IMG/VR virus record: IMGVR_UViG_3300036766_002289
Coordinates: 1-64,000 of that record
Strand: one strand, 5' to 3'
Length of the DNA: 64,000 nt
In this document: in pieces, positions 21,124 to 54,651 of the stretch
Position numbering within the stretch: position 1 is the first letter of the stretch
How the letters are laid out: each line of letters begins with the position of its first letter
Notes under the pieces: model-generated
What the model saw: only the letters and a program-made list of their open reading frames with translations
Told to the model about the DNA's origin: nothing
Database searches by the model: none
Made by a program: the position numbers and the translations under genes

Positions 21124-21241
21124 GAGTGGGTAGCTAAAAGATTGCTTTGGCAACTTAGACAAGTAATTGTCTCCAACCCTGAAGCTTACAAGCACTAGTA
21201 TTTGAAACTAAAGAATGTTGGTTCAAGTCCAACCCCACTCG
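21124..21241 (+). ncRNA. tRNA-like RNA (UUG loop) with a permuted Y-RNA-like module in the D-loop
   Basis: acceptor GAGTGGG/CCCACTC; T arm GTTGG-TTCAAGT-CCAAC; insert CTTAGAC-aagtaatt-GTCTCCAA...CTTACAAGC. Confidence 0.75.
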
Positions 21242-21248
21242 CTTAGTA

Positions 21249-21377: not shown

Positions 21378-21501
21378 GGGGGATAAAGAAAGCTTTCGCA
21401 ACTTGGACAAGAAATTGTCCCCAACGGTTTGAGCTTACAAACTTTTAGGTAAAGAAAAGACTTTTAATCTTTTTAAATCGGTTCGACTCCGATATCCTCC
21501 A
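21378..21501 (+). ncRNA. tRNA-Lys(UUU)-like RNA with a permuted Y-like module between acceptor stem and D arm
   Basis: GGGGGAT/ATCCTCC-A; AC arm AAAGA-CTTTTAA-TCTTT; T arm ATCGG-TTCGACT-CCGAT; insert CTTGGAC..GTCCCCAA..CTTACAAAC. Confidence 0.75.
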
Positions 21502-21595
21502 CTAAGGCTTTCACTGAGCCTAGATTTTGTGTGACGGTCGCCTAGACCCAGAGCAAAACGATCAGTGATAAACGGGGTTTAAAAAGGCTGGATTA

Positions 21596-21702
21596 TGGTT
21601 GACGATAGCGGCAGATTTTACTATTTGCTGCTAAAACTTAGACAGGAAACTGTCTCCAAAAGTAGTAGCTTACAAACCGAATATAACTTTAAGATTTAAC
21701 CA
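21596..21702 (+). ncRNA. permuted Y-RNA-like RNA without a tRNA body
   Basis: TGGTTGA/TTAACCA closing stem; CTTAGAC-aggaaact-GTCTCCAA; GCTGCTA/TAGTAGC; CTTACAAAC. Confidence 0.65.
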
Positions 21703-21735
21703 AGAGACTAAATAAAATGAACAGTAGTTAAAAAT

Positions 21736-21872: not shown

Positions 21873-21944
21873 GTCTGGGTAGCCAAGCGGTAAGGCATCA
21901 GTCTGCAAAGCTGAATAGCGTAGGTTCAAATCCTACCCCAGACT
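21873..21944 (+). tRNA. tRNA-Cys(GCA)
   Basis: cloverleaf; TCAGT-CTGCAAA-GCTGA; U73. Confidence 0.9.
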
Positions 21945-22529
21945 TATTATTTCTGTTATGTGTTTTTTAATTTGTAGGAATGCTTCTTTAACGTAATGTT
22001 CTTTAGATACTAAGTCAGGGACAACAATTAGGTTTATATGGTTTTGATTTGCTAAGGCTAGTTTTTCTTTGTCTCTTTCTTGTATTCTGTTCAACTTGTT
22101 TTGGCCGTAAATTGGTTTGAAATGTACGATGCCGTTCCATTCTATTGCTAATTTTATAGATGGAATAGCAATGTCTACTTCATAACCAGGCAATAGAGTT
22201 TTATCATTAGGTATTATCTCCAATGATTGAAATTCTTCCTTTAAAAGGTCAAACAATATTTTTTCGCATCTTGAACGACGGGATTTACGTTTTTTAGTAT
22301 TATTGAAGGTTGTGGCGCAAGATTTACTACAAAAGGTGTTGGCTTTGATTTCGCTTGGGCGTCTGTAGAATTTTTCACCGCAAAGATGACAAGATACTTC
22401 TAGTTTTGTTTGGGTGTATGACGAAGAACATTTTCTTGAACAAAAAGGATTATTTCTTTTTTTGTAGTTTGATGTTCTTGAGAATTCTCTTTTGCAAAAG
22501 GTGCAGATAAGTTTGTGTGTTAATAGCAT
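21933..22529 (-). CDS. zinc-finger + PD-(D/E)xK (Vsr/DUF559-like) putative homing endonuclease
   Basis: CxxC / FCSxxC repeats, EVDI...LAIEWNG.VH; likely start at 22529 after ACTATAT. Confidence 0.75.
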   Translation of the reverse strand: MLLTHKLICTFCKREFSRTSNYKKRNNPFCSRKCSSSYTQTKLEVSCHLCGEKFYRRPSEIKANTFCSKSCATTFNNTKKRKSRRSRCEKILFDLLKEEFQSLEIIPNDKTLLPGYEVDIAIPSIKLAIEWNGIVHFKPIYGQNKLNRIQERDKEKLALANQNHINLIVVPDLVSKEHYVKEAFLQIKKHITEIISLG

Positions 22530-22582
22530 ATATATTATATAGTAGGATTGGAACGTTTCTGAACCTACTGCTGACTTTTGAC

Positions 22583-22610
22583 TTGACAATGCGGAAAGTT
22601 GTGGTATAGT
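22583..22610 (+). promoter_or_regulatory. sigma70-like promoter of the Ubl gene and second RNA cluster
   Basis: TTGACA-N16-TATAGT, then an AGGAGG SD. Confidence 0.65.
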
Positions 22611-22629
22611 AAAAAGGAGGGAAGGAAAA

Positions 22630-22863
22630 ATGGACAATCAAGTATTAGACGCGGTTCCTCAGATTCACATTCGCTACGACGGACGTAGCATTGATATTCC
22701 TTTGAGCGAAGTGGACATTGGTGTTTTGTCTACCGACGATCAGATTCGCAACGCAGTTGCGGAAAACATGGGCGTTCCAGTAGCTAAGCTCCGCGCTTTT
22801 GCTATTGATAAGAACGTAGAAACGAATCACATCACGCTTCGACCAGAAGCTGTGTTTGGTTGA
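22630..22863 (+). CDS. small ubiquitin-like (beta-grasp-like) protein ending in Gly
   Basis: 77 aa; beta-beta-alpha-beta-like pattern; C-terminus LRPEAVFG; strong SD; ThiF and JAB genes nearby. Confidence 0.6.
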   Translation: MDNQVLDAVPQIHIRYDGRSIDIPLSEVDIGVLSTDDQIRNAVAENMGVPVAKLRAFAIDKNVETNHITLRPEAVFG

Positions 22864-22879
22864 GATTTTTTAATCCCCA

Positions 22880-22944
22880 GGCATGGGGCTGACTTGGTGG
22901 GGAGTTCCGAAAGGAATTACCAAGTGATAGTTTGAAACCATGCC
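22880..22944 (+). ncRNA. unclassified structured RNA
   Basis: GGCATGG/CCATGCC, CTTGGT/ACCAAG, GTTCC-GAAA-GGAAT nested stems. Confidence 0.45.
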
Positions 22945-22948
22945 AATT

Positions 22949-23078
22949 GCAGGAGTAGCTGAAAAGTTAATAGTTTTTTGTACTTGGACGGTTTAAACCC
23001 GTCCCCGACTTAAAAAACTTACAAACAAGCGTCAGTAACCTAAACTGAAGAATGTAGGTGCGAATCCTACCTCCTGCT
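22949..23078 (+). ncRNA. tRNA-like RNA (CCU loop) with a permuted Y-like module in the D-loop
   Basis: GCAGGAG/CTCCTGC; TCAGT-AACCTAA-ACTGA; GTAGG-TGCGAAT-CCTAC; insert CTTGGAC..GTCCCCGA..CTTACAAAC. Confidence 0.75.
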
Positions 23079-23084
23079 CTTTAT

Positions 23085-23155
23085 TCCGTCTCCTAAATGG
23101 AAAACTTACAAACAATGCAATGAATAGTTTAAATAGTTTTCTGAACTTAGACGGA
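23085..23155 (+). ncRNA. stand-alone Y-RNA-like RNA
   Basis: TCCGTCT-CCTAA...CTTAGACGGA; GAAAACT/AGTTTTC; CTTACAAAC. Confidence 0.75.
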
Positions 23156-23178
23156 TTATTTTTATTTTAAGTGACTTG

Positions 23179-23305
23179 TTTTGTCTCCAATGATGGGAAC
23201 TTACAAACAATTTGCTCAATGGTAGAGCATCAACTTTAGACGTTGAAGAGTGTTGGTTCAATTCCAACATTGTTTTCCAAAACAGTTTTCATGACTTAGA
23301 CAAAA
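23179..23305 (+). ncRNA. YrlA-like Y RNA: Ro-binding stem enclosing a tRNA-like domain
   Basis: TTTTGTCTCCAA...CTTAGACAAAA outer stem; inner AAACAAT/ATTGTTT acceptor, GCTC/GAGC D arm, TCAAC-TTTAGAC-GTTGA, GTTGG-TTCAATT-CCAAC, then TCCA. Confidence 0.8.
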
Positions 23306-23310
23306 TGAGA

Positions 23311-23403
23311 TGGCTGCTAGCTTAACGGTATGAAGCGCTTGTGAATTCGGGCTTTAAATCCTGATGAAACTTGAGAAGTAGGGTTCAACTCCTTACGTGG
23401 CCA
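23311..23403 (+). ncRNA. tRNA-like RNA with expanded anticodon arm
   Basis: TGGCTGC/GTGGCCA, GCTT/AAGC D arm, TTCAACT T loop; about 38-nt anticodon region with internal TCGGG/CCTGA hairpin. Confidence 0.6.
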
Positions 23404-23404
23404 C

Positions 23405-23481
23405 TTTCTGTCCCCCAAAGGTAAAGCTTACAAACATTACCCAAATTCAGTGTTAAACAGCTTTATAAACTTGGACAGAAA
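23405..23481 (+). ncRNA. stand-alone Y-RNA-like RNA
   Basis: TTTCTGTCC-CCCAA...CTTGGACAGAAA; TAAAGCT/AGCTTTA; CTTACAAAC; T-run. Confidence 0.75.
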
Positions 23482-23778
23482 TTTTTTTACTTCAAGATAT
23501 AAGGACAGCGCGGTAAGAAGACAGGTGATTGTGGTCTTCCTTCTGACTAGCGGGAAAAAGCGCATTTACCGAGCAAAAGTTCTCTTTCATCGGAATGACT
23601 CGGCATTAGCCAACTTTATGATAGGGCAAGCTAGTTAATATCTTGGGGTGTAAAAATGTCTGAAGCAGAGATTTTAGTGCAAAAGATTAAAGCCGCCATA
23701 CAGGCCCATAAAGACAAAGAATCAAATAAAATCAATAATTTAGTAAAGCAAATTAATAAAGTCATCCATAAATAATGC

Positions 23779-24411
23779 ATGATTAAATTTGCAGAATTCG
23801 TAAACAGAAAGCAATTTTCTGTTACAGTTGATGAATCAAGTAGATTATTAACTAAGATTAATATCAAATCTGAAGATTATTTAAATTACTTATTTGAACA
23901 TGAAGAACTTTGGGATAAAGACCCTGTAAAGGTTCTGAATGAGATTAATCCGTTTTCAGCAGGTTGGTCTGCCTTAAAAGGGGGTTTAGGAGCTATGGGC
24001 GGCAATAGAAATGCTGCTTATTATCAAAAGCTTTTAGACCAAGCTAAAACTTTGCCACCAGAGAAATTGCAACAGGCTGGTTTAACTCCAGAAGATTTAA
24101 ATGCATTAGACCAAATGCGAGCGGATTCTGCAAAACAAGGTGCCGCTGGATTCTTTGGTGGTATGAAACAAGGTTGGGAAAACAGTCGTCAGCAGCAAGT
24201 TTTAAACAAATTAAGCCAAGCATTAGGTAAAGGTGCTTATTCTCAACAAACCCAACAACAGCAGCAACAGGGTCAAAACCAACAAAGTCAGGGTCAACAA
24301 CAGCAAAGTGGTCAGCAAATGTCACAGGTTAACCCACAGGCTTTAAGACAGGTGCAAGGACATTTACAGGCTTTGAACCAAGCTATTTCTGGAATGCTTC
24401 AAGGTGGGTAA
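23779..24411 (+). CDS. Gln/Gly-rich hypothetical protein (MIKFAEF N-terminus)
   Basis: TAAATA 4 nt upstream; poly-Q C-terminus; terminator at 24432-24456. Confidence 0.65.
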   Translation: MIKFAEFVNRKQFSVTVDESSRLLTKINIKSEDYLNYLFEHEELWDKDPVKVLNEINPFSAGWSALKGGLGAMGGNRNAAYYQKLLDQAKTLPPEKLQQAGLTPEDLNALDQMRADSAKQGAAGFFGGMKQGWENSRQQQVLNKLSQALGKGAYSQQTQQQQQQGQNQQSQGQQQQSGQQMSQVNPQALRQVQGHLQALNQAISGMLQGG

Positions 24412-24501
24412 AATTTTCATCACAATAAATTAAATCCGTTGAAAAACGGATTTTTTCGTTTACATACTCAGAAATTGTAGTATCATACAGAAGTTCAATA
24501 A

Positions 24502-26043
<1,542 letters not shown>

Positions 26044-26063
26044 AGAAAGCTTTGGAGGTCCAC

Positions 26064-26100
26064 AGACAATATCCACCTTTTACAGTGGATATTGTCTTTT
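26064..26100 (+). terminator. intrinsic terminator
   Basis: AGACAATATCCAC/GTGGATATTGTCT stem plus T-run. Confidence 0.8.
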
Positions 26101-26124
26101 ATTTTGTCTTGAACTTTCTATTAT

Positions 26125-26484
26125 ATGAATATGAAAGCCGATGAAAAATTTTTCTACATGGGGGTCCAACATGGTATAAGTGACCAATGTAATAAGTATT
26201 CCAATATGGTTACTAACATCATGGCTATCAAGAACCATCCATGTACCCGAGTATATCCAGCTAAGTATTTGGAAGGGTATACCAAAGGTTATGAAGATAC
26301 TAAGGGTAAATCTTGGTACATAGTTACCGTTGCCAATACTAAGATTAAGTCTTACTACGCTGATGGGCAATGGTTAGATACTAAAGATAATGCTACTAAG
26401 TTCCCTACTAGGGCCGCGTTAGAATTGGTAATGAAGAAAATTCCAAGCCAGCGTGGTGGTAAGTGTGGCATGACATTAGAATAG
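26125..26484 (+). CDS. hypothetical protein, paralog of 13230..13580
   Basis: shared motifs YLEGYTKGYE, KSWY, ATKFPTR. Confidence 0.65.
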   Translation: MNMKADEKFFYMGVQHGISDQCNKYSNMVTNIMAIKNHPCTRVYPAKYLEGYTKGYEDTKGKSWYIVTVANTKIKSYYADGQWLDTKDNATKFPTRAALELVMKKIPSQRGGKCGMTLE

Positions 26485-26510
26485 GAGATACACCAAATGT
26501 CACTATAAAT

Positions 26511-26999
26511 TTGGATGAAGCCAAACTAAAAATGGACAAAACAATTCAATTATTAGAAGAACAATTGAAGGGCATCAGAAGGTCATCTATTAGTGCTGGT
26601 TTCATTGAAACTGTTAAAGTCCCTTATTATGGGCAAATGACGCCTATACGTTTTATAGGTATTGTCGGTAAATGTCAAAATGGTATAACCATAACTCCAC
26701 ATGACTCAAGTTTGGTAAATGGTATTGCTAAGTTTCTTCAGGATGAAAACTTACTTAATGCTTATGCATTCTCAAAAACAACGGTTGTTATTAGTATTCC
26801 ACCTGCAAACACAGGTGAAATTGAGAGAGTTAAAAATCATATTAAGAAGTTGGGCGAAGACTCCAAGATTTCAATAAGGAATTTGAGGAAAAGTATAAGG
26901 AAATCCTTATCTAAGGAAGAATTGAAGGAAGCAGAAAAAGATTTACAAATCCTAACAGATGAGGCTTGTAACAAAATAGAGGAAATGACTCATGACTAA
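26511..26999 (+). CDS. frr: ribosome recycling factor
   Basis: L..IR..S.S...IETVKVPYYG, ITPHD, IPP, K.GE..KISIRN.R, EKDLQILTD; start uncertain. Confidence 0.85.
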   Translation: MDEAKLKMDKTIQLLEEQLKGIRRSSISAGFIETVKVPYYGQMTPIRFIGIVGKCQNGITITPHDSSLVNGIAKFLQDENLLNAYAFSKTTVVISIPPANTGEIERVKNHIKKLGEDSKISIRNLRKSIRKSLSKEELKEAEKDLQILTDEACNKIEEMTHD

Positions 27000-27742
27000 A
27001 CAAGAAATATTGGCTTTGGGAAAAATAGAAAACGATCAACAGTTGGACGAAGCTGTTGATTTGTTAGATGAATATATTATGGATAAGTTTGATACTTTAA
27101 ATGCGACTGAGCTTAAGGAATTAGAAATTCTTTCTGATCTTATTTATGAGTATGAAGAACATACTGATATTTTGAACCGTCCTTACGAGATTGGCGATGG
27201 TGGAATATGCTCGTAAATTATGATGAAGTGATGAGACAGATAAAGGTTAGGGCAGCTTTGAATAGATTGTCGTTTGAAGAAATTGAATGGGTTAGAGATG
27301 ATGGAACTAAAATTGAGTTTGATAAAAGACTCGCAGAGGAATGGAAGTTTTTTGGGCTTAGTAATGTCAATTTTCCAGAATTGGTTCTTTCAAGGGTTGT
27401 GGCTGGAGAACAGAAAGAACTCTTAGAAGAATTAGTATGGAAGATTGATAGTTGACAATTGTGCGGCATTTCTGCGATAATATAGGAAGAAAGCTTAGTT
27501 GTACTGACATACATAGGTAAACGGAGAAAAAAAATGAATCTTGTCAAAAACTCAATGTATAAAGTTAAACATACTCACACAGATCACCCAGGTAGAATTG
27601 GTAGATTTGAATTTCTAGGTGGTCCAAGAGCGGAATTTATTCTTTTGTCTGATTACACCGACCCATTGCGTTTATTTGCAGTTGGTCTATATGACATAGT
27701 TGACTTTGATCCTAAAGTTGATAATGTTGTGGAGTAATACAA

Positions 27743-28279
27743 ATGCCACGTCTAAAGTGGGTAACTGTCAATGAGTATGGAACTCCTTGGCTTAAGGCAT
27801 CCAATGTCGTAAATTTGGACATAATGGATTTATGCGAGGGTAGGTTTTGGGGCGGGCATCAAATTTACATTGCCATTAATTTCTCTATTCATAAAAGAAA
27901 TTTCGAAAAAGGACCAGATGATTGGTCACATCAATTATTAGCCCCAAATGGTGTCCACATCTATCTTCACAGTGTAGAAGAAGGCAAGGAACTTGCAGAA
28001 ATTATCTATGCTAGAATCTTAGTCTCATTAGTACCCAAGGAAACGCCTTTAATTAAGTCTTTATTAATGAATAAAGCCAAGCATAAAAAAGCCAAGTTGG
28101 AGGCATTACTTAATAAGTGGGATGTAAGTGGGGAGGTTTATTATTCAAATAAGTATCCAAAAGGGTGGATGCATGTTTGGAAGCCAGGTCACTCACCACA
28201 AAGATTAGGTTTTGATTATGCTCAAGCTGTAGATTTGATTGAAAGTGGAGTAATGCATTTAATGGCTTACAATAGGTGA
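27743..28279 (+). CDS. hypothetical protein
   Basis: 178-aa ORF with SD. Confidence 0.55.
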   Translation: MPRLKWVTVNEYGTPWLKASNVVNLDIMDLCEGRFWGGHQIYIAINFSIHKRNFEKGPDDWSHQLLAPNGVHIYLHSVEEGKELAEIIYARILVSLVPKETPLIKSLLMNKAKHKKAKLEALLNKWDVSGEVYYSNKYPKGWMHVWKPGHSPQRLGFDYAQAVDLIESGVMHLMAYNR

Positions 28280-28603
28280 CACAGTGACAGAAAATAAAGC
28301 GTTTTTGATGCGAAAGCAAATTAGACTTTTAGTGTTGAAATATTTATTAACCCTAAACTATAAGGGTAAAGGACTGGTCGTAATAGACGGTGAAAAATTA
28401 ATGGATGAGTGTAAGATTACACCACACCAAATGCGGAGAAGTTTGGGTGATTTGTGCAAAGGATTGTCATTGTATATACAGATTCATCCTGATTCATTTG
28501 TTGCGAAATGGAAGATTTCAGAACCTAGTTTGAAACAAGTTGCAGCGGCTTTAGACATTGCAATGACCGATGGTAATTGTACTAGTTGGAATCCAGAGGA
28601 AGT

Positions 28604-29533
28604 ATGAACCTATTCGATAAACTTGCGGCAGAAGAAACAGCTTTCTTCAATTCTCAATTATTTTCCCCTGTTCTCAAGGGAAAGCCAATTAGAGTACGTA
28701 TTGCTGGAATCATCGTAACCCTTAGTGTTACTAAGCCTAAGAATTTCGAAGGTTGGGGTGTTTTTGCACCTATATCCGCTAAAACCGCTCGTTTCGTTCG
28801 TGAACCAAATATGACCGAAAAGCAAAGTTATTTTAACTTATTCCCAGCATTAAGACTTATTTTGTGTCGTCATAGTAATGACCAATGGTTCGGTATCCCC
28901 GCCAATCAGTCTGATACTAGATTCAAAATTACTGGAACCGTACCAATCCAACTTTGTACTGAAGTACAAATGTTTGATATGGTTAAGGTTCGTTTTGATG
29001 GGACTAATATCTGGTTTGAACAAATTGATCCCCGACATAGCCTAAAGCATTCTGCATATATGCGTGAATCGGTTATTAAATTCCTAGAAGCTCCAAAGCT
29101 TGAACTTTCAGGTTTAACTATCGAAGAACGCGATGCATATTTAATTGCATTGAATGACGCTTTGGCTGCGGACGCAGAAGCAAAGCGTGACAAGCAAGAA
29201 GAACGTATCCAAAAGGCGTTGGCATTAACTGGTGCCACATATCAAAGCTATATTGAACGTGGTGACACATTTACCATTGAATTTATGGTCGGACGTGAAC
29301 GCCATCGTTCAGTAGTCAAAAAGGAAAATCTTGCCGTTGAATCTGCTGGTATTTGTCTTGCTGGTACAGATCGTAACTTTGATCTTCAAAGCTTGGTTGG
29401 GGTTATTAGAGAAGGTCAACGTAATCGTAGAATTGTTCGCGTTGGGGAAAATCGTCAATTTGGTAATCCTAATGACTATGGTTATGAACAAGAAGACTAT
29501 GATCGTCAACTTGGAGATGATGACTATGACTAA
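28604..29533 (+). CDS. conserved-looking hypothetical protein; candidate E2-like conjugating enzyme
   Basis: C-terminal domain with AGICL (compare the E2 active-site GxICL) followed by FDLQSLVGVIRE helix; near JAB, ThiF and Ubl genes. Confidence 0.45.
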   Translation: MNLFDKLAAEETAFFNSQLFSPVLKGKPIRVRIAGIIVTLSVTKPKNFEGWGVFAPISAKTARFVREPNMTEKQSYFNLFPALRLILCRHSNDQWFGIPANQSDTRFKITGTVPIQLCTEVQMFDMVKVRFDGTNIWFEQIDPRHSLKHSAYMRESVIKFLEAPKLELSGLTIEERDAYLIALNDALAADAEAKRDKQEERIQKALALTGATYQSYIERGDTFTIEFMVGRERHRSVVKKENLAVESAGICLAGTDRNFDLQSLVGVIREGQRNRRIVRVGENRQFGNPNDYGYEQEDYDRQLGDDDYD

Positions 29534-30299
29534 GAAACTAGTACTAGGTTGTTTTTGCATGGCTATTTTGGCTAGCTGTTTGTTTATTGTCTTTGCACCA
29601 ATTAATGCAAATAAACTACAGCAGACAGAGCATAAACATAAGCCAGGTCAATTTGGCGGTTTTATCATGGAATTAGGTAAAGATAACTACCACTTGGAAG
29701 TTTCTTTAGGCAAAGATGGCGTAATTACGATTTATACGCTTGGCAAAGATGAAACTAGAGTTATTTCTGTAGAGAAACAAGTTATAACCGCCTATTTGAA
29801 GGATGATAAATTTGATTTAATGCCTAGTCCCCAAGCTGGCGATGAAGACAAAACTTCCAGGTTTATTGGTAAATTGCCAGCCAAGTATTTGAGCGAAGGT
29901 GAGATTAGTATTATTTTTAATATCGTTATAGAAGGGCAACGGTTTAGGGCTAGGATTTTAATTACTCAATTACCTCAAACCGACTTGTCGAGTGCTGAAG
30001 AGAAGAAACTTTATTTAACGCCAGGTGGCCTTTACACTGAACAGGATATCATTGCAAATGGGAAGACTTCCGCTTCTAATAAGTTTAAGGATTTTGTTCC
30101 ATCCCATGATCTAAAGCCTAAGAAAGGCGACCGAATTTGTCCTATCACTCTTACTAAAGCCAATCCAAAATGTACTTGGATTATCAACGGTAAAGAATAT
30201 TGGTTCTGTTGTCCACCTTGCATCGAGGAATTTCTTATTTTGGCTAAGGAAAAACCTGAACAAGTCAAATTACCTGAAGAATATATTAAAGGAGAATAA
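29526..30299 (+). CDS. secreted protein with His-rich motif and C-terminal YHS-like CP..FCCxxC domain
   Basis: signal peptide, EHKHKPGQFGG, CPITLTKANPKC..YWFCCPPC. Confidence 0.65.
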   Translation: MTKKLVLGCFCMAILASCLFIVFAPINANKLQQTEHKHKPGQFGGFIMELGKDNYHLEVSLGKDGVITIYTLGKDETRVISVEKQVITAYLKDDKFDLMPSPQAGDEDKTSRFIGKLPAKYLSEGEISIIFNIVIEGQRFRARILITQLPQTDLSSAEEKKLYLTPGGLYTEQDIIANGKTSASNKFKDFVPSHDLKPKKGDRICPITLTKANPKCTWIINGKEYWFCCPPCIEEFLILAKEKPEQVKLPEEYIKGE

Positions 30300-30300
30300 C

Positions 30301-30753
30301 ATGAAAAGAGAGCATTGTTGGGTATTGTTGGGTAGTGTTAGGGAGAATTTATGGTTTGGGCGGCGAGCTAAAATGACTCGTGGTGCCCCTTGTAGTGTTG
30401 ATTTTAATGCAGATTATGTTATCAATCGTGAAGAGACTAAGGGCGATGTAATCGGCTGGTTACATACGCACCCAGGTATGATTGCCAGTCCAAGTAACCG
30501 TGACCATCGCACAATGAAGGCATGGGTTCTTGCATTAGGCCACCCCTTGGTTTGTGCGATTGCTGGCGTAGATGGATTGCGTGCTTATTGGTATATGGAT
30601 GATGAGTCTGAACCGATTGAATCTGCGGTATGCGTTAAGCTAGCTAATTTCATTGTTGGTGTTACTAATCCTGTTTGTTGTGATAATTTTGACCAGTTGA
30701 TAAATAAGTGTGTATCTTGGGACGAAGCAGAAGAAAAATTAGGACTTAAGTAA
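30301..30753 (+). CDS. JAB/MPN+ (Mov34) metalloprotease
   Basis: VIGWLHTHP....PSNRD JAMM motif HxH-x7-S-x2-D. Confidence 0.85.
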   Translation: MKREHCWVLLGSVRENLWFGRRAKMTRGAPCSVDFNADYVINREETKGDVIGWLHTHPGMIASPSNRDHRTMKAWVLALGHPLVCAIAGVDGLRAYWYMDDESEPIESAVCVKLANFIVGVTNPVCCDNFDQLINKCVSWDEAEEKLGLK

Positions 30754-30830
30754 TTGGTTAGTTCACTCCCGTTGGCAACGCTGCCTTTGAGCAGGTGATA
30801 GGAGTGGATTAGCCTTTTTAGGAGCATATC

Positions 30831-31331
30831 ATGAGTCGTTATTTTGTTTCGATTTCTGTTGAAGAATTAAAGTCAAAAGTCGATGCTTATTTGGACGATG
30901 ATTCTAATATAAGGCATTTAACGCCTATTATTAGTAAGGATTTAGATAAAGTTAAATTCGATACAGAGAATATGGAGTCGGAGTCTGATTATGGTTATGG
31001 TCACGCCGAGGATTTAGTTGGCTATCATGTCCTTGAAAATGGTATGCCTATTTTGGGAGTTACAGCAGGCGGCGATTGGGAATGGCCAATATTTTTCTGT
31101 ATTTATTTTGATGGCAAAAAGCTTCGTGGTTATATTCCAGAAAAAGGTAATACTTGGAATACTGACACAAAAAAAGCCTATGGAAATGATGATGGTGCTG
31201 ACTTAAAAAATGCCAAGAAACGTTGGCCAATCCAGTATCCAAAAGATACTACTGATACTGAAGTCGAGCCATATGGTGATCTTGATTTAATGATTGAGGA
31301 TATTACAAATCGTATTATCAAAAAAGTCTAA
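30831..31331 (+). CDS. hypothetical protein
   Basis: ORF with SD; GGDWEWPIFF..Y.DGKKLRGYIP motif. Confidence 0.6.
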   Translation: MSRYFVSISVEELKSKVDAYLDDDSNIRHLTPIISKDLDKVKFDTENMESESDYGYGHAEDLVGYHVLENGMPILGVTAGGDWEWPIFFCIYFDGKKLRGYIPEKGNTWNTDTKKAYGNDDGADLKNAKKRWPIQYPKDTTDTEVEPYGDLDLMIEDITNRIIKKV

Positions 31332-31351
31332 AATGAGTCATACATAATTGT

Positions 31352-32293
31352 ATGACAGTAGAATTTTTTCCAGGCCCTGATTCGGATTTTTGGACAGTGC
31401 CAGCGGGTGTTTTTTCTGTTTTTGTAGAAGCAGTTGGCGGCGGTGGTGGTGGTTCTAGTGGTCATGACGGTGATTCATTACAATTTGGCGGTGACGGTGG
31501 TGGTGGCGCTGGCTATGGTGCAGCTGTTTTAGCTGTTATACCTGGAGGTGTTTATAGTCGATATTCATCAGGGGGTGGAGATAGTAGTGATTTCGGCCCA
31601 GCCATAGTTCGTGGAGGCGGCGGCGGGGGAGGTCCATTCCCTTGGTCAGGTGGGACGGATAATATAGGCACCATTACAGTCAACGGTGGAGATGGTGCCC
31701 CATCTCCTATGATTGTTTTTGGCAATGGTGGCGTGGGCGGCGCATCCGCTGTTGGTGGCAGTGCTGGTACAGCTGGAATTGGTGCTGTTCCAGGTCCAGC
31801 TGGCAATGGTGGTGATGGGGGTTTTGCAGGTGGAGGTGGTGGGGGTGGAGGTGGTGCCCTTGTTGGTGCTGGCAGTGGAGGCGCAGGCGCGGTTGGCTAT
31901 ATTCGACTTACTTATACCATCATTTATTTAGGTTCCCCAAGTCCTTCAATAGACAATCCTGGCTCACCTATAGTGCCAGGCAATACAATAACTATTCCTG
32001 GTACTCCTGACACTGAGAGTTGTCTTGACACGATTACAAGTGTTACTTTTAATGGAATACCAGCATCTTTTTCTATAGTGGACGGTAATCTTATAATCAT
32101 TGTACCGCCTGGAGTTTCTGGGAATGGTATATTAGAAGTGACTTCAGACTGTGGAGTTATGGATTTCGCTTATATCGCTGAAAATGCAGTTGGTTGTTGT
32201 AAAACAGTAGTTTATTGCTGTAAAGTTTGTGCCCCAACAAGTTCCTGCCCCCTTGGAATATTACTTATGGAACTTCTTTTAAAAAGTGACTAA
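31352..32293 (+). CDS. glycine-rich protein with C-terminal IPT/TIG-like domain (putative virion fibre/decoration)
   Basis: WTVPAGV..VGGGGGG, Gly repeats, SVTFNGIPASF..IIVPPG; paralog of the next gene. Confidence 0.7.
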   Translation: MTVEFFPGPDSDFWTVPAGVFSVFVEAVGGGGGGSSGHDGDSLQFGGDGGGGAGYGAAVLAVIPGGVYSRYSSGGGDSSDFGPAIVRGGGGGGGPFPWSGGTDNIGTITVNGGDGAPSPMIVFGNGGVGGASAVGGSAGTAGIGAVPGPAGNGGDGGFAGGGGGGGGGALVGAGSGGAGAVGYIRLTYTIIYLGSPSPSIDNPGSPIVPGNTITIPGTPDTESCLDTITSVTFNGIPASFSIVDGNLIIIVPPGVSGNGILEVTSDCGVMDFAYIAENAVGCCKTVVYCCKVCAPTSSCPLGILLMELLLKSD

Positions 32294-32300
32294 ATAATGC

Positions 32301-33248
32301 ATGACTGTATTGTTATTTCCTGGTCCAACTTCGACTACTTGGACAGTGCCCCCTGGTGTTATTTCTGTTTTTGCTGAATGTTATGGTGAGGGTGGTCTCG
32401 CTTCTAATGGAGCAACAGGAGAAGGCCCAAATGTTGCGGGCGGCGACGGTGGCGGTGGTGGTGGCTATGGGGCTTCAACTTTAGTCGTGATTCCAGGTGA
32501 AGTTTATAATGTTACAGCAGGCAGTGGCGGTAGCGCAACTGATTCTAATTTTAGTGGCCCTGGTGGAACCGTTGATGGTAGCGGTGGTTTATTTCAAGCT
32601 CCACCTAATCATGGTACTGGCAGTGGTGATGTTACTGATGATGGGGGTGATGGCATAGCAGGTGCTTTTCCAGCTGGTTTTAGTGCTGGTGGAGATGGTG
32701 GCGCAGGTGGTGGTCCATCAGGTGGCAGTGGTGGTACTGGTGGTGCAGGTCATGATGATGCCGCTGGCGATGCGGGTAGTCCTGGTGGTGCTTATGGAGG
32801 GGGCGGCGGCGCAGGTGGGGGTGGCTTTCTAGGTGGAGGTGCAGGGGCAAATGGTGCAATCGGTGTTGTAATACTAACTTTTAGTTCGATTTATTTACTG
32901 AATCCAGACCCACCAATAGATACTGCACCTGGAATTACTCCTGGTGATATTATCACTATTCCAAGTGTCCCAGATACTGAAGATTGTCTTAATACAATTG
33001 TAAGTGTCACTTTTAATGGAGTGCCAGCATCTTTTTCTATAGTAGGCGGTAATCTTGTAATTACTGTCCCATCTGGCATTACTAGTGGCACATTGGAAGT
33101 TATTTCTTCAGAATGCGGGTCTATGACTTTTTCTTATATTGTTAATAGTGGTAATGTAGTGGCAATTTGTTGCAATGTATGTGCTGTAACTAGCAGATGC
33201 CCACCCTGGATGGTTAGATACGGTAGCTCTATAAGAACAAGAGGTTGA
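32301..33248 (+). CDS. glycine-rich protein with IPT/TIG-like domain, paralog
   Basis: same architecture as 31352..32293; TAAATA upstream. Confidence 0.7.
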   Translation: MTVLLFPGPTSTTWTVPPGVISVFAECYGEGGLASNGATGEGPNVAGGDGGGGGGYGASTLVVIPGEVYNVTAGSGGSATDSNFSGPGGTVDGSGGLFQAPPNHGTGSGDVTDDGGDGIAGAFPAGFSAGGDGGAGGGPSGGSGGTGGAGHDDAAGDAGSPGGAYGGGGGAGGGGFLGGGAGANGAIGVVILTFSSIYLLNPDPPIDTAPGITPGDIITIPSVPDTEDCLNTIVSVTFNGVPASFSIVGGNLVITVPSGITSGTLEVISSECGSMTFSYIVNSGNVVAICCNVCAVTSRCPPWMVRYGSSIRTRG

Positions 33249-33292
33249 CATTTAGACATTTCGTGCTATAGTGCCCTATAGGGGAGGATACA

Positions 33293-33940
33293 ATGGCAAA
33301 TAGCAAATTTCATCATGAAGAAATCTATCGTGGTAAGGATTTAGCCGCAAGACTAGGTGTTCCAATCACCGTCTGTGGTGCAGGTGCCATCGGTAGCAAT
33401 CTAGTAGATAATCTTACCCGTCAAGGATTTAGCAAAATTACCGTTATTGACATGGATCGTGTTGAAGTTCATAATCTTAATACTCAGATTTATGCTGAAG
33501 CCGATGTTGGTGCGCTCAAGGCAGACGCACTTAAAAACCGCGTGTTTAGAAACATTGGCGTGGAAATTGAAGCAGTCAACAAGGAAATGTCAGCTGCCAA
33601 TGTAAAGCAGCTTCTCAAGAAGGCTAGTATCCTTGTTGACTGCTTCGATAATAACAAAGCACGGCAATTAGTACAGAATCATGCAAGAGAGAAGGGTAAT
33701 CCTTGCCTACATATTGGTCTTTATGAAGATTATGCCGAGGTTATGTGGGATAAGAAATATCGTGTTCCCAAGGACCAAACACAAGGCGATGTATGTGATT
33801 ATCCGCTTGCTCGTAATATTGCCATGTTAGCGGTCATTGTAGCAACTGAAGAACTCTTAAGCTTTCAGTTGGAGGAGCCACCAAGGTTCCAAGATTGGTC
33901 AATTACTCTAAAAGATTTAGCAATTAAAAAATTCTCTTGA
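33293..33940 (+). CDS. ThiF/MoeB/E1-like adenylyltransferase
   Basis: VCGAGAIGS, IDMDRVEVHNLNTQ, DVGALKA, VDCFDN; DVCDYP candidate catalytic Cys; own TTGACA..TATAGT promoter at 33245-33272. Confidence 0.9.
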   Translation: MANSKFHHEEIYRGKDLAARLGVPITVCGAGAIGSNLVDNLTRQGFSKITVIDMDRVEVHNLNTQIYAEADVGALKADALKNRVFRNIGVEIEAVNKEMSAANVKQLLKKASILVDCFDNNKARQLVQNHAREKGNPCLHIGLYEDYAEVMWDKKYRVPKDQTQGDVCDYPLARNIAMLAVIVATEELLSFQLEEPPRFQDWSITLKDLAIKKFS

Positions 33941-34173: not shown

Positions 34174-34229
34174 ATGGAACCAATCCCCGCCAAAATTTGG
34201 CGGGGATTATTTTTTAAAAGGAACTCAAT

Positions 34230-34913
34230 ATGAAAAAGTTTTTATTATCAATGATTGCAGTTTTAATCGCGCCCATTACATTGTTTGCAGGTGAAATTAC
34301 CGTCACAGGCACTAGTGTCGTATCCATGCCAGCTACGACAGGCTATATCACAGTAGCCGTAGTCACAGAGGCAAAAACTCCAGCAGATGCACTAGCCCTA
34401 AATAAGGATGCAACGACTAACATTTTTGCACTTTTGAAGAAATTGAATATTAAAAAAGAGGAAATGCAAACTCAAGGTTTTCAATTATCCCCTAAGTTCG
34501 TTTATATTCAAAACCAAGAAGCAACCCTTACGGGGTATACAGTTAAATATACTTTGCAGATAACTGTATGCGATATAGCTAATACAGGCAAGGTATTGGA
34601 TAGCATTGTTAAGGAAGGTGCCAATCGAGTTGAAGGGGTAAGATTTGGTGTTACAGATGATAAAATGCAAGAAGCTTTGACTAAAGCACGAACGGAAGCT
34701 GCTAAGAATGCCAGAGAAAAAGCTTTGTTATTCGCATCAGCTTTGAATCCTAATGCAAAATTGAAACTAAAGACACTTTCTGAGCATAGTGCAGATACAG
34801 GTAATAGAGTATATTCTAATATGGCAGACCGTAGCCCAGGTGGAAGCACCAATATTGAAGGTGGTGAAATTTCAGTAAAAGTTCAAGTTCAAACAGTTTG
34901 GGACTGTGATTAA
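34230..34913 (+). CDS. SIMPL (DUF541) domain periplasmic protein
   Basis: signal peptide; ITVTG, GYTV, GANRVEGVRF, A..NAREKA, GEISV..QV. Confidence 0.85.
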   Translation: MKKFLLSMIAVLIAPITLFAGEITVTGTSVVSMPATTGYITVAVVTEAKTPADALALNKDATTNIFALLKKLNIKKEEMQTQGFQLSPKFVYIQNQEATLTGYTVKYTLQITVCDIANTGKVLDSIVKEGANRVEGVRFGVTDDKMQEALTKARTEAAKNAREKALLFASALNPNAKLKLKTLSEHSADTGNRVYSNMADRSPGGSTNIEGGEISVKVQVQTVWDCD

Positions 34914-53510: not shown

Positions 53511-53556
53511 CTTTACAACGTCTTGGTTTCGTGCTATACTAATCATGGAGGAACCA

Positions 53557-54651
53557 ATGAAACTACCTACGCTTTATTCACGTCGTTCTGATGGCAAAGT
53601 CCAAATCTGGGAAAAAGAAATTGTAGACAATAAATACCGTACACATTCAGGCATTAAAGACGGTGAAATCGTCACTGCTGAGTGGACAGTGTGTGTAGAA
53701 AAGAACTTAGGCAAGACAAATTACATTGACGCCAAACATCAGGCAGTCACGGAAGCCAAGGCCGAATGGCAGAAGAAAAAAGATAAAGGTTATAAGGAAG
53801 ATATCAAGGATATTGATAATTCCACTTTTTTTGAGCCGATGCTTGCCAAGGTTTGGCAGGATTATAAGGATGAGGCAATTTATCCTGCCTATGTCCAGCC
53901 TAAGTTAGACGGAATGCGTCTTATTGCAAATAAAGAAGGTCTGTGGACAAGGAACGGCAAAGAGTATAAGTCTATTCCGCACATCTATGAAGCTCTGAAG
54001 CCTTTATTTAAATTCAACCCTAAATACATTTTTGACGGGGAGGTTTACGCGGATAAATTCGCGCACGATTTCAACAAAATCTGTTCGCTGGCTAAAAAGA
54101 CTAAACCAACGGATGAAGACATTGCAGAGTCTGAGAAAAGTATTGAATATCATGTTTACGATTTCCCGTATTGGGATGATGTATTCAGTGCCCGTCATGC
54201 TGAGTTGCTTAAAGTCGCTAAGCATTTCAAGAACAAGAAATTAAAGATTGTTGAGACGCATGAAGTTGCGTCTAGTAAAGAAATTGATACTCACTATGAG
54301 AAGTTTGTTCAGGACGGTTATGAGGGTTTAATGGTTCGCATGGATGCAAAGTATGAGAATAAGCGAACTAAGGTTCTGCTTAAGTATAAGGAATTTAAGG
54401 ATGATGAGTATGAAATTTTGGATGTAGTGGAAGGTGTAGGCAATAAGAGTGGTGGTGCAGGGGCACTTGTTTGTAAGAACAAGGACAACAGCACGTTCCA
54501 TTCTAACATTAAGGGCAATCGTGAGTTCTGTAAGGCCATGTTAATCAATAAGAATGATTACATTGGCAAGATGGCGACTATTCAATTCTTTAATTTGACG
54601 GTGGATGGTGTGCCTCGATTCCCTTATTTCTTGAGGGTTCGTGATGAATAG
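53557..54651 (+). CDS. ATP-dependent DNA ligase
   Basis: FEPMLA, QPKLDGMR (motif I), FDGEVY, YHVYD, GYEGLMVR, LLKYK, GVPRFP. Confidence 0.95.
   Translation: MKLPTLYSRRSDGKVQIWEKEIVDNKYRTHSGIKDGEIVTAEWTVCVEKNLGKTNYIDAKHQAVTEAKAEWQKKKDKGYKEDIKDIDNSTFFEPMLAKVWQDYKDEAIYPAYVQPKLDGMRLIANKEGLWTRNGKEYKSIPHIYEALKPLFKFNPKYIFDGEVYADKFAHDFNKICSLAKKTKPTDEDIAESEKSIEYHVYDFPYWDDVFSARHAELLKVAKHFKNKKLKIVETHEVASSKEIDTHYEKFVQDGYEGLMVRMDAKYENKRTKVLLKYKEFKDDEYEILDVVEGVGNKSGGAGALVCKNKDNSTFHSNIKGNREFCKAMLINKNDYIGKMATIQFFNLTVDGVPRFPYFLRVRDE

Follow-up and report, generated by a model that had tools for sequence, protein, structure and literature searches.

The stretch of DNA analyzed here, referred to as the window, comprises positions 1 to 64,000 of the IMG/VR virus record IMGVR_UViG_3300036766_002289 and belongs to a 590,099-bp metagenomic contig (JGI 3300036766, Ga0373622_0000005), listed in IMG/VR as a viral contig (L092). 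It is AT-rich and has 37 tRNA genes over its 64 kb, which is what a huge phage would be expected to show. Its plus strand carries five genes that together form a conserved module: a ubiquitin-like protein (Ubl) candidate, a Ro60-like protein, a member of a ~300-amino acid (aa) family labelled p315 in this analysis (309 aa in the window), a JAB metalloprotease, and a minimal ThiF-type E1 (Table 1). An earlier note, made from the sequence alone, had singled out these genes as a candidate Ubl conjugation system linked to a Ro60/Y RNA locus, and the open reading frame (ORF) listing has all five on the plus strand where that note had placed them. Megablast of the region against GenBank phages returned no match, and by tblastn the only GenBank phage record with the signature gene of the module was LR756511.1, an unannotated 595-kb 'uncultured phage'.

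Conservation of the five-gene module

The genes are kept in a conserved order on one strand, with the Ubl followed by the Ro60-like protein, p315, the JAB where present, and ThiF. This order was observed in the phage loci L001, L002, L005, L008, L010, and L093–L101; all five genes were identified in L001, L002 (44–66% identical), and L005 (tblastn). Compact operons with stop-to-start overlap of the genes are present in the marine phage contigs L008 and L010, and the operon in L012 is likewise compact or overlapping. The distribution of p315 is considerably wider, with 415 homologs found and an exhaustive HMMER search expanding the family to 1068 representative clusters, all of ~270–310 aa; the one annotated homolog that was examined carries the RefSeq name 'hypothetical protein'. 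A scan limited to one genome per species identified 410 loci that encode p315 relatives, complete chromosomes included, from at least eight phyla (Planctomycetota, Cyanobacteria, Chloroflexota, Acidobacteria, Actinomycetota, Ignavibacteria, Armatimonadota, and Myxococcota), with Nostoc, Microcoleus, Oscillatoria, Trichodesmium, and others among the cyanobacterial carriers. IMG/VR contributed 13 more viral loci, and one distant homolog occurs on a contig with planctomycete-type genes.

When the ORFs of 97 loci were clustered, wide sharing was limited to five families, p315 (97 loci), ThiF (81), the Ro60-like protein (65), the Ubl (47), and the JAB (29), always in the same order and on a single strand. 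ThiF adjoins p315 in 81 of the 97 loci, the tightest pairing of any gene with ThiF. Gene-set completeness was scored in the 62 loci with enough flanking sequence, where all five genes were present in 20, all but the JAB in 19, and a further eight were without a detectable Ubl. The cyanobacterial modules are stretched to as much as 7–8 kb, such that some partners may lie outside the flank that was fetched. As the same order and strand recur in huge phages, marine phages, and bacterial chromosomes, the linkage of the genes is not due to chance. The functional tie between the Ubl, E1, and JAB genes and the Ro60-like locus that the earlier note had drawn is thus borne out by synteny, and the co-occurrence in other genomes on which it had staked that tie extends across phages and at least eight bacterial phyla. 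Its description of the pathway as phage-borne has to be revised, as the module is also chromosomal in Planctomycetota, Cyanobacteria, Chloroflexota, and others.

Identities of the encoded proteins

An AlphaFold2 (AF2) model of the Ubl, built with the close set of 22 homologs, has a predicted local distance difference test (pLDDT) score of 82.4, a beta-beta-alpha-beta-beta order, and a flexible C-terminal tail. The top Foldseek matches in the PDB are the UBL domains of Dsk2, hPLIC-2, and SUMO along with the beta-grasps of protein G/L (best probability 0.92, best E 0.04). One member of the Ubl family has a weak match to the SUMO-like Rad60-SLD (E 0.008), and the sequence in the window has no family match. 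Taken together, the model supports a beta-grasp fold with moderate strength. The C-terminus RP(E/Q)AV(F/Y)G-stop is nearly universal, from phage to Nostoc, and in the further set of 41 orthologs from phage and bacterial loci Gly77 is directly followed by the stop codon in 39. Between one and nine additional residues follow the Gly in 8 of the 22 close homologs, and a JAB is present at the locus for both of those Ubls with post-Gly residues and a known context. The possibility of a spurious ORF was ruled out by protein-level conservation across very different G+C contents and by the confident fold. Both features given in the earlier note, the fold that it had called by eye and the terminal Gly, therefore hold, the former at the strength that the Foldseek values allow.

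The identification of the E1 as a member of the ThiF family is solid on sequence grounds, and the PADLOC E1-E2 models also match it, with E down to 1.3e-18. Profile matches in the PDB include SUMO E1, TcdA, MoeB, Uba4, ThiF, MccB, and Cap2, and cover positions 1–150 only. Across 78 sequences, the residues G29, G31, G34, D53, D55, R56, N61, Q65, K76, D116, D119, and R124 are, together with C168, kept in 75–78, and the Cys168 of the DVCDYP motif is invariant (78/78); the adenylation site, with its nucleotide and Mg residues, is accordingly conserved, and so is the Cys to which the earlier note had pointed. By linear offset C168 would fall near the crossover-loop Cys187/Cys184 of MoeB/ThiF, the alignments ending at approximately position 150. 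The 215-aa protein has no CxxC pairs and so lacks the paired CxxC zinc site of MoeB/ThiF.

The assignment of the JAB is similarly solid, as judged from its Pfam Prok-JAB score (30.2 bits against a cut-off of 25), the matching PADLOC JAB models, and an intact JAMM motif, E4...H55-T-H57-P-x6-S65-x2-D68 (E...HxHx7Sx2D). E4, H55, H57, S65, and D68 are kept in 28–29 of the 29 orthologs. The JAMM protease of the earlier note is thus upheld, and the protein is a candidate deconjugase or precursor-processing peptidase.

Cys251 of p315 is invariant in all 95 sequences compared and lies within the best-conserved stretch of the protein, GICLxGxDxxFDLQSLV. The AF2 model (pLDDT 85.6) is beta-rich over residues 1–160, continues into a 36-residue helix, and has a C-terminal part in which four strands lead into the Cys251 loop and a further helix before the acidic tail, which is disordered, with Cys251 placed four residues beyond the fourth strand. 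Foldseek searches with the whole model against the PDB and BFVD recovered S1/OB/cold-shock proteins and were dominated by the N-terminal domains, the first two thirds of the protein being S1/OB-like; the matches include exosome cap subunits, ribosomal protein S1, Unr, Dis3L2, and Mpa/Rpt OB domains, with Ctf19-Mcm21 (5mu3_A, E 0.013) as the single RWD protein. Sequence and profile searches of the PDB gave no match, 40 family members compared with Pfam at E ≤ 10 yielded no UBC-type match, and a comparison by hhalign with PRTRC system proteins A and B was also without a match, though uninformative in that each was a single sequence. The description that fits p315 best is that of an S1/OB-type protein that probably binds RNA and has a catalytic-looking Cys domain. 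The ORF listing by program extends the start to a TTG at 28586, while the JGI gene call is 309 aa. In phages and Planctomycetota the disordered acidic tail ends in an aromatic residue (DDDDY/W), reminiscent of single-stranded DNA-binding protein-type tails, and this type of tail is absent from the cyanobacterial p315.

The Ro60-like protein matches only vWA domains in Pfam, where the TROVE model gave no match. The metal ion-dependent adhesion site (MIDAS) of its vWA domain is intact, with D323-x-S325-x-S327, T385, and D409 invariant in the alignment. Its best match in the PDB is the Ro60 of the Thermus phage phiLo (9L5Y/9KOP; E 5.5e-5, or 1.2e-4 with a profile), the match to Deinococcus Rsr reaches only E 0.067, and phrog_850, 'RNA-binding protein', is also matched. 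With a clear vWA/MIDAS and a distant TROVE match, 'Ro60-like' is the correct label.

Associated RNAs and neighbouring genes

The Ubl gene is surrounded by RNA elements of a family designated R1, composed of a bulged-C hairpin (AACUUGGAC ... GUCCCCAA), the motif GCUUACAAAC, an anticodon-like hairpin, and a T-arm. In the window, the R1 hairpin also forms the 62-nucleotide (nt) D-loop insertion of a tRNA-like gene that has full acceptor, anticodon, and T arms and carries A, not U, at position 33 of the anticodon loop. A covariance model built from six copies returned 95 matches from 60 sources, all on the strand of the module. The matches cluster just 5' and 3' of the Ubl gene in phages, Planctomycetota, Chloroflexota, Cyanobacteria, and Actinomycetota, and the family is seen in L001, L005, L010, L014, L018, L023, and others; in L018 one R1 precedes the Ubl and three R1 separate it from the Ro60-like gene, and L014 and L023 are arranged alike. 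Compensatory changes occur in 10 of the 11 modelled pairs (46-sequence alignment), the significance deriving from the comparative model only, as single-sequence folds of the elements were not significant. An Rfam search of the elements gave no Y RNA or YrlA match at E ≤ 1, and the R1 consensus has no GNCGAA, the motif reported for YrlA. The covariation indicates that R1 is a real tRNA-like RNA family, distinct from the Rfam Y RNAs. Thus, of the Y RNA array within which the earlier note had situated the Ubl gene, the array itself stands, as a conserved feature flanking the Ubl, but its RNAs are tRNA-like and not recognized as Y RNAs by Rfam. The bulged-C hairpin presumably resembles the Ro-binding helix of Y RNAs, a lead and not a test, and the R1 RNAs may bind the Ro60-like protein.

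The Ubl gene is further flanked by true tRNAs, in phages as well as in bacteria, and those of the bacterial loci have varied anticodons. A CUA (amber-reading) tRNA is directly 5' of the Ubl in four Nostoc loci, and other bacterial loci have 2–7 ordinary tRNAs arrayed upstream of it. In the window, 33 of the 37 tRNA genes lie in a very large array downstream of the module, a region that also encodes an ATP-dependent ligase and a Band_7 protein.

Several accessory genes accompany the module. Tpt1/KptA RNA 2'-phosphotransferase (10 loci), an AAA ATPase (7), an RNase T-like exonuclease (5), and NADAR (5) are lineage-specific and located between the Ro60-like gene and p315; DUF6847 also occurs, as do an L7/L12 paralog in five Nostoc-type cyanobacterial loci, a PARG-like gene 3' of the Ubl in phage L001, and a ribosome recycling factor homolog inside the module of the window. 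These genes point to RNA repair or translation, with RNA repair and ADP-ribose as the theme, and assign the module to the type of RNA-repair and quality-control neighbourhood that has been discussed for TROVE proteins with tRNA-like partners (PMC7824862). No ThiS, ThiG, MoaD/E, or Cys-synthesis Pfam families were recorded for the genes across ~0–60 kb of the window, in agreement with the absence of thiamine, molybdopterin, and cysteine genes remarked on in the earlier note, and no families for these three pathways are among the conserved and accessory families of the 97 loci. Membership in a thiamine, molybdenum cofactor, or Cys pathway was ruled out, as the partner genes (ThiG/H, MoaE, CysM) were not found in the window or the 97 loci. 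Rhodanese, cysteine desulfurase, and PP-loop ATPase are similarly missing from the module and from these families.

Other genes within the 11 kb of the window module are more restricted. The 166-aa protein downstream of the JAB is not core and is kept in the closest phage relatives only, the L002 protein at the same position being unrelated. Two paralogous Gly-rich proteins of ~314 aa between the JAB and ThiF occur only in the window phage and have a weak match to phrog_863 (tail fibre assembly) and Cys-rich tails. A 234-aa Cys-rich ORF on the minus strand, between a tRNA-Cys and the Ubl, has no Pfam match, is absent from related loci, and may be a mobile insertion. Two further genes are not conserved with the module, one between p315 and the JAB for a predicted membrane protein of 246 aa whose YHS/TRASH-like Cys motif is weak, and one just past ThiF for a secreted SIMPL/DUF541 protein. 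Near-consensus extended -10 promoter-like sites are located directly 5' of the Ubl and ThiF genes, and terminator-like hairpins 3' of the Ubl, Ro60-like, and ThiF genes. These suggest separate transcription units in the window phage, unlike the compact bacterial operons.

Table 1. Positions of the module genes, RNA elements, and neighbouring features in the window and, where labelled, in other loci
Feature	Position	Strand	Description
Three R1 copies	21152-21248, 21400-21508, 21635-21714	+	Upstream of Ubl; partial tRNA covariance model matches
Cys-rich ORF	21933-22637	-	234 aa
Promoter-like site	22583-22610		5' of Ubl gene
Ubl	22630..22863	+	ORF; 77 aa, ending RPEAVFG-stop
Terminator-like hairpin	22838-22864		3' of Ubl gene
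tRNA-like gene with 62-nt D-loop insertion	22949-23085	+	Downstream of Ubl; tRNA-like gene also delimited as 22949-23078; R1 copy 22981-23085
R1-like element fused to tRNA-Leu(UAG)	23144-23283	+	Downstream of Ubl
Further R1-family site	24500-24574		
Ro60-like protein	24541..26043	+	500 aa; TROVE-like N-terminal region and vWA
Terminator-like hairpin	26064-26097		3' of Ro60-like gene
Ribosome recycling factor homolog	26463-26999		PF01765, E 5e-23
p315	28604..29533	+	309 aa with AGICL; no match in any family library
p315 acidic tail	29450-29533		
Predicted membrane protein	29559-30299		246 aa
JAB/JAMM metalloprotease	30301..30753	+	150 aa; Prok-JAB E 4.4e-7
166-aa protein	30831..31331	+	tblastn matches only in L001, L005, L093
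Paralogous Gly-rich proteins	31352-32293, 32301-33248		~314 aa each
Promoter-like site	33245-33272		5' of ThiF gene
Minimal ThiF-type E1	33293..33940	+	215 aa, DVCDYP; PF00899 E 4.5e-31
Terminator-like hairpin	34182-34208		3' of ThiF gene
SIMPL/DUF541 protein	34230-34913		E 4e-44
tRNA array	36400-61314		33 of 37 tRNA genes
ATP-dependent ligase	53545-54651		
Band_7 protein	~59.6-60.5 kb		
Accessory genes, other loci	L042 3288-3893 and 4027-5235; L031 6326-6886; L051 6840-7367; L001 11130-11822		
L7/L12 paralog	L083 3619-4011		
CUA tRNA, Nostoc loci	L070 1608-1680; L072 2464-2536; L079 1992-2064; L086 1490-1564		Directly 5' of Ubl

A proposed Ubl relay and its place among known systems

The invariant Cys in each of the E1 and p315 and a beta-grasp protein ending in Gly are the components that a thioester relay from an E1 to a carrier requires. 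The module may accordingly represent a Ubl modifier pathway built into a Ro60-like ribonucleoprotein (RNP), with an E1-activated relay operating on the Ro60-like RNP, and the chances of this interpretation are put at about even. From the combination of genes we infer a series of steps in which the ThiF-type E1 would bind ATP and adenylate the free C-terminal Gly77 of the Ubl, the activated Ubl would form a thioester on Cys168 of the E1, and it would then pass to Cys251 of p315, whose C-terminal alpha/beta domain would serve as an E2-like carrier. The tandem S1/OB-like domains of p315 could dock on RNA or on the Ro60-like particle loaded with tRNA-like RNAs, and the final acceptor of the Ubl would be either a part of that particle or a client recruited to it. 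Where present, the JAB would remove the Ubl and trim the few precursors with post-Gly residues. It is proposed that the module belongs to the upkeep of RNA and translation during conflict; tRNA arrays accompany it, and RNA-repair genes do so in some lineages.

It should be noted that several observations weigh against this interpretation. The Foldseek matches of the Ubl do not reach statistical significance, even at the best E of 0.04, and its terminus is (F/Y)-G with a single Gly, not the Gly-Gly of ubiquitin, SAMP, and ThiS/MoaD. For p315, Foldseek with the whole model (PDB, BFVD) gave no E2; searches with the whole protein and its halves in Pfam, NCBIfam, PADLOC, and PHROGs gave no UQ_con, Prok-E2_A-E, or RWD match; and an HPN-like motif is lacking, the upstream sequence ...VESAGIC... 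having no conserved His or Asn, though some bacterial E2-like families are likewise without HPN (PMC1779556). In residues 173–273 a helix is followed by four strands, the Cys loop, and a second helix, an order that fits a minimal UBC/RWD core but would fit a double-stranded RNA-binding domain (dsRBD)-like domain too. As the order is shared with the dsRBD and there is no E2 match by sequence or fold, the E2 assignment of p315 is plausible but unproven; of the earlier note's 309-aa protein with AGICL, then, the ORF, motif, and Cys have stood up, and the E2 identity is unconfirmed. Further, the Ro60-like protein is only a distant TROVE relative, no conjugation target is identifiable from the sequence, p315 and ThiF are alone within 8 kb in 11 of the 62 loci, and the JAB is absent from about half of the complete bacterial loci, which suggests that reversal is not obligatory.

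The missing E2 signature, in all searches of p315, and the resemblance of its S1/OB-like domains and acidic tail to nucleic-acid-binding proteins would also fit a pathway in which the E1 alone conjugates the Ubl, in the manner of SAMP/UbaA or Thermus TtuB/TtuC, with p315 serving as an adaptor that binds RNA, or as the principal target, and its Cys otherwise used. Ubl conjugation without an E2 is established for SAMPs and TtuB. This pathway is considered unlikely, though deserving of some weight, given that the Cys251 motif is better conserved than any other part of p315, as catalytic sites typically are, and that no gene is paired more tightly with ThiF than p315. Similarly, the Ubl could be a sulfur carrier whose thiocarboxylate donates S to tRNAs or R1 RNAs, with p315 as an RNA-binding persulfide or sulfur transferase and the JAB acting as in TtuD or Mec+. 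The Thermus Ubl/E1/JAMM triad serves tRNA thiolation, and a context dense in tRNA and tRNA-like genes, the RNA-binding-type domains and single invariant Cys of p315, and best NCBIfam matches of the E1 to ThiF and MoeB types all favor such a role. Those NCBIfam scores are far under every equivalog cut-off, the module is without the rhodanese, cysteine desulfurase, or PP-loop ATPase for RNA-base activation, the Ubl has a single Gly where known carriers have Gly-Gly, and p315 has no Cys cluster of the TtuA/Ncs6 type, all of which makes sulfur transfer quite unlikely.

There is only a very slim chance that the ThiF-like enzyme and p315 act directly on RNA, as TcdA does on tRNA t6A, with the small protein as a TGS-like RNA-binding beta-grasp subunit. 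TGS domains are RNA-binding beta-grasp folds (PMC1779556), TcdA is among the best PDB relatives of the E1 (E 1.7e-14), and some loci have p315-ThiF and no Ubl detectable nearby; the E1 is no closer to TcdA than to SUMO E1 in the PDB profile search, the JAB co-occurs with the Ubl, and the stop directly after the conserved Gly in nearly all Ubl orthologs is a hallmark of C-terminal activation. Next to no credence is given to the genes being neighbours by descent only, with no shared function. The window has them scattered across 11 kb, with unrelated genes in between as well as separate promoter- and terminator-like sites, but the comparative data contradict this explanation, as order and strand are kept across phyla at 28–65% identity while the intervening genes are replaced, and L008, L010, and L012 have compact or overlapping operons. 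Returning to the relay on the Ro60-like RNP, the carrier's S1/OB-type domains, the position of the Ubl gene within the RNA array, and the lack of an evident protein target leave room for a transfer of the Ubl from the p315 Cys251 thioester onto RNA, in place of or in addition to protein lysines, for example as a 3'-end ester on R1 RNAs or on damaged tRNAs held by the Ro60-like ring. The chemistry would parallel aminoacyl-adenylate formation followed by tRNA charging, and the Ubl-RNA would be a peptidyl-tRNA-like mark in RNA repair or ribosome rescue; the likelihood of this variant is slim.

Like the bacterial Ubl operons (type II CBASS Cap2/Cap3, Bil, Bub, and types 6a–6e; PMC1779556), the module combines a substrate that is a beta-grasp or ends in Gly with a ThiF-type E1 whose Cys is conserved, and it likewise has a JAB isopeptidase and, adjoining the E1, a partner that bears a Cys. 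It differs from these in having no CD-NTase, E1-E2 fusion, or recognizable UBC/Prok-E2, in its S1/OB-like partner, and in the obligatory Ro60-like TROVE/vWA protein and tRNA-like RNAs. Membership in CBASS or Bil was ruled out, as no CD-NTase or E1-E2 fusion is among the conserved families and no E2 is recognizable, and the operon types described in 2006 list no TROVE, vWA, or tRNA genes (Iyer et al. 2006, PMC1779556). The Haloferax SAMP/UbaA/HvJAMM1 and Thermus TtuB/TtuC/TtuD and TtuA systems likewise have a small Ubl, a minimal E1, no dedicated classical E2, a JAMM protein, and a tRNA link. Compared with these, the module has a Ubl with a single terminal Gly and no PP-loop thiolase or rhodanese, and p315 and the Ro60-like protein have no counterpart in either system.

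On the RNA side, the bacterial Ro60 (Rsr)/YrlA/PNPase system and the Ro60 of phage phiLo (PMC12135203) share with the module a TROVE/vWA-type protein beside tRNA-like noncoding RNAs and a presence in phages. Unlike in Rsr/YrlA, the protein of the module is a distant TROVE relative and its RNAs have neither an Rfam Y RNA match nor GNCGAA; no Ubl/E1 partnership for Rsr is reported in the literature searched. The RNA-repair neighbourhoods with ROT/TROVE scaffolds have in common with the module a TROVE-like protein, a tRNA-like partner, and an RNA-repair context, represented here by Tpt1, RNase T, NADAR, and PARG, and their description includes no Ubl, E1, JAB, or p315 component (PMC7824862). No literature linking TROVE/Ro60 with ThiF, Ubl, or JAB was found in a full-text search that covered few subscription journals, such that a prior description is possible; an Asgard virus preprint lists Ro60 and E1-like genes, unlinked. 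The bacterial Ubl-E1-JAB pathways known at present serve in sulfur transfer or belong to a few antiphage systems, and beside these the module would be a widespread further class (>1000 p315 clusters and 410 species-genome loci, plus huge phages). It would offer a tractable prokaryotic model of how a Ubl modifier is tied to RNA quality control or the maintenance of translation, gives the large p315 family a role that can be tested, and may help explain the mobile tRNA arrays of huge phages and some bacteria.

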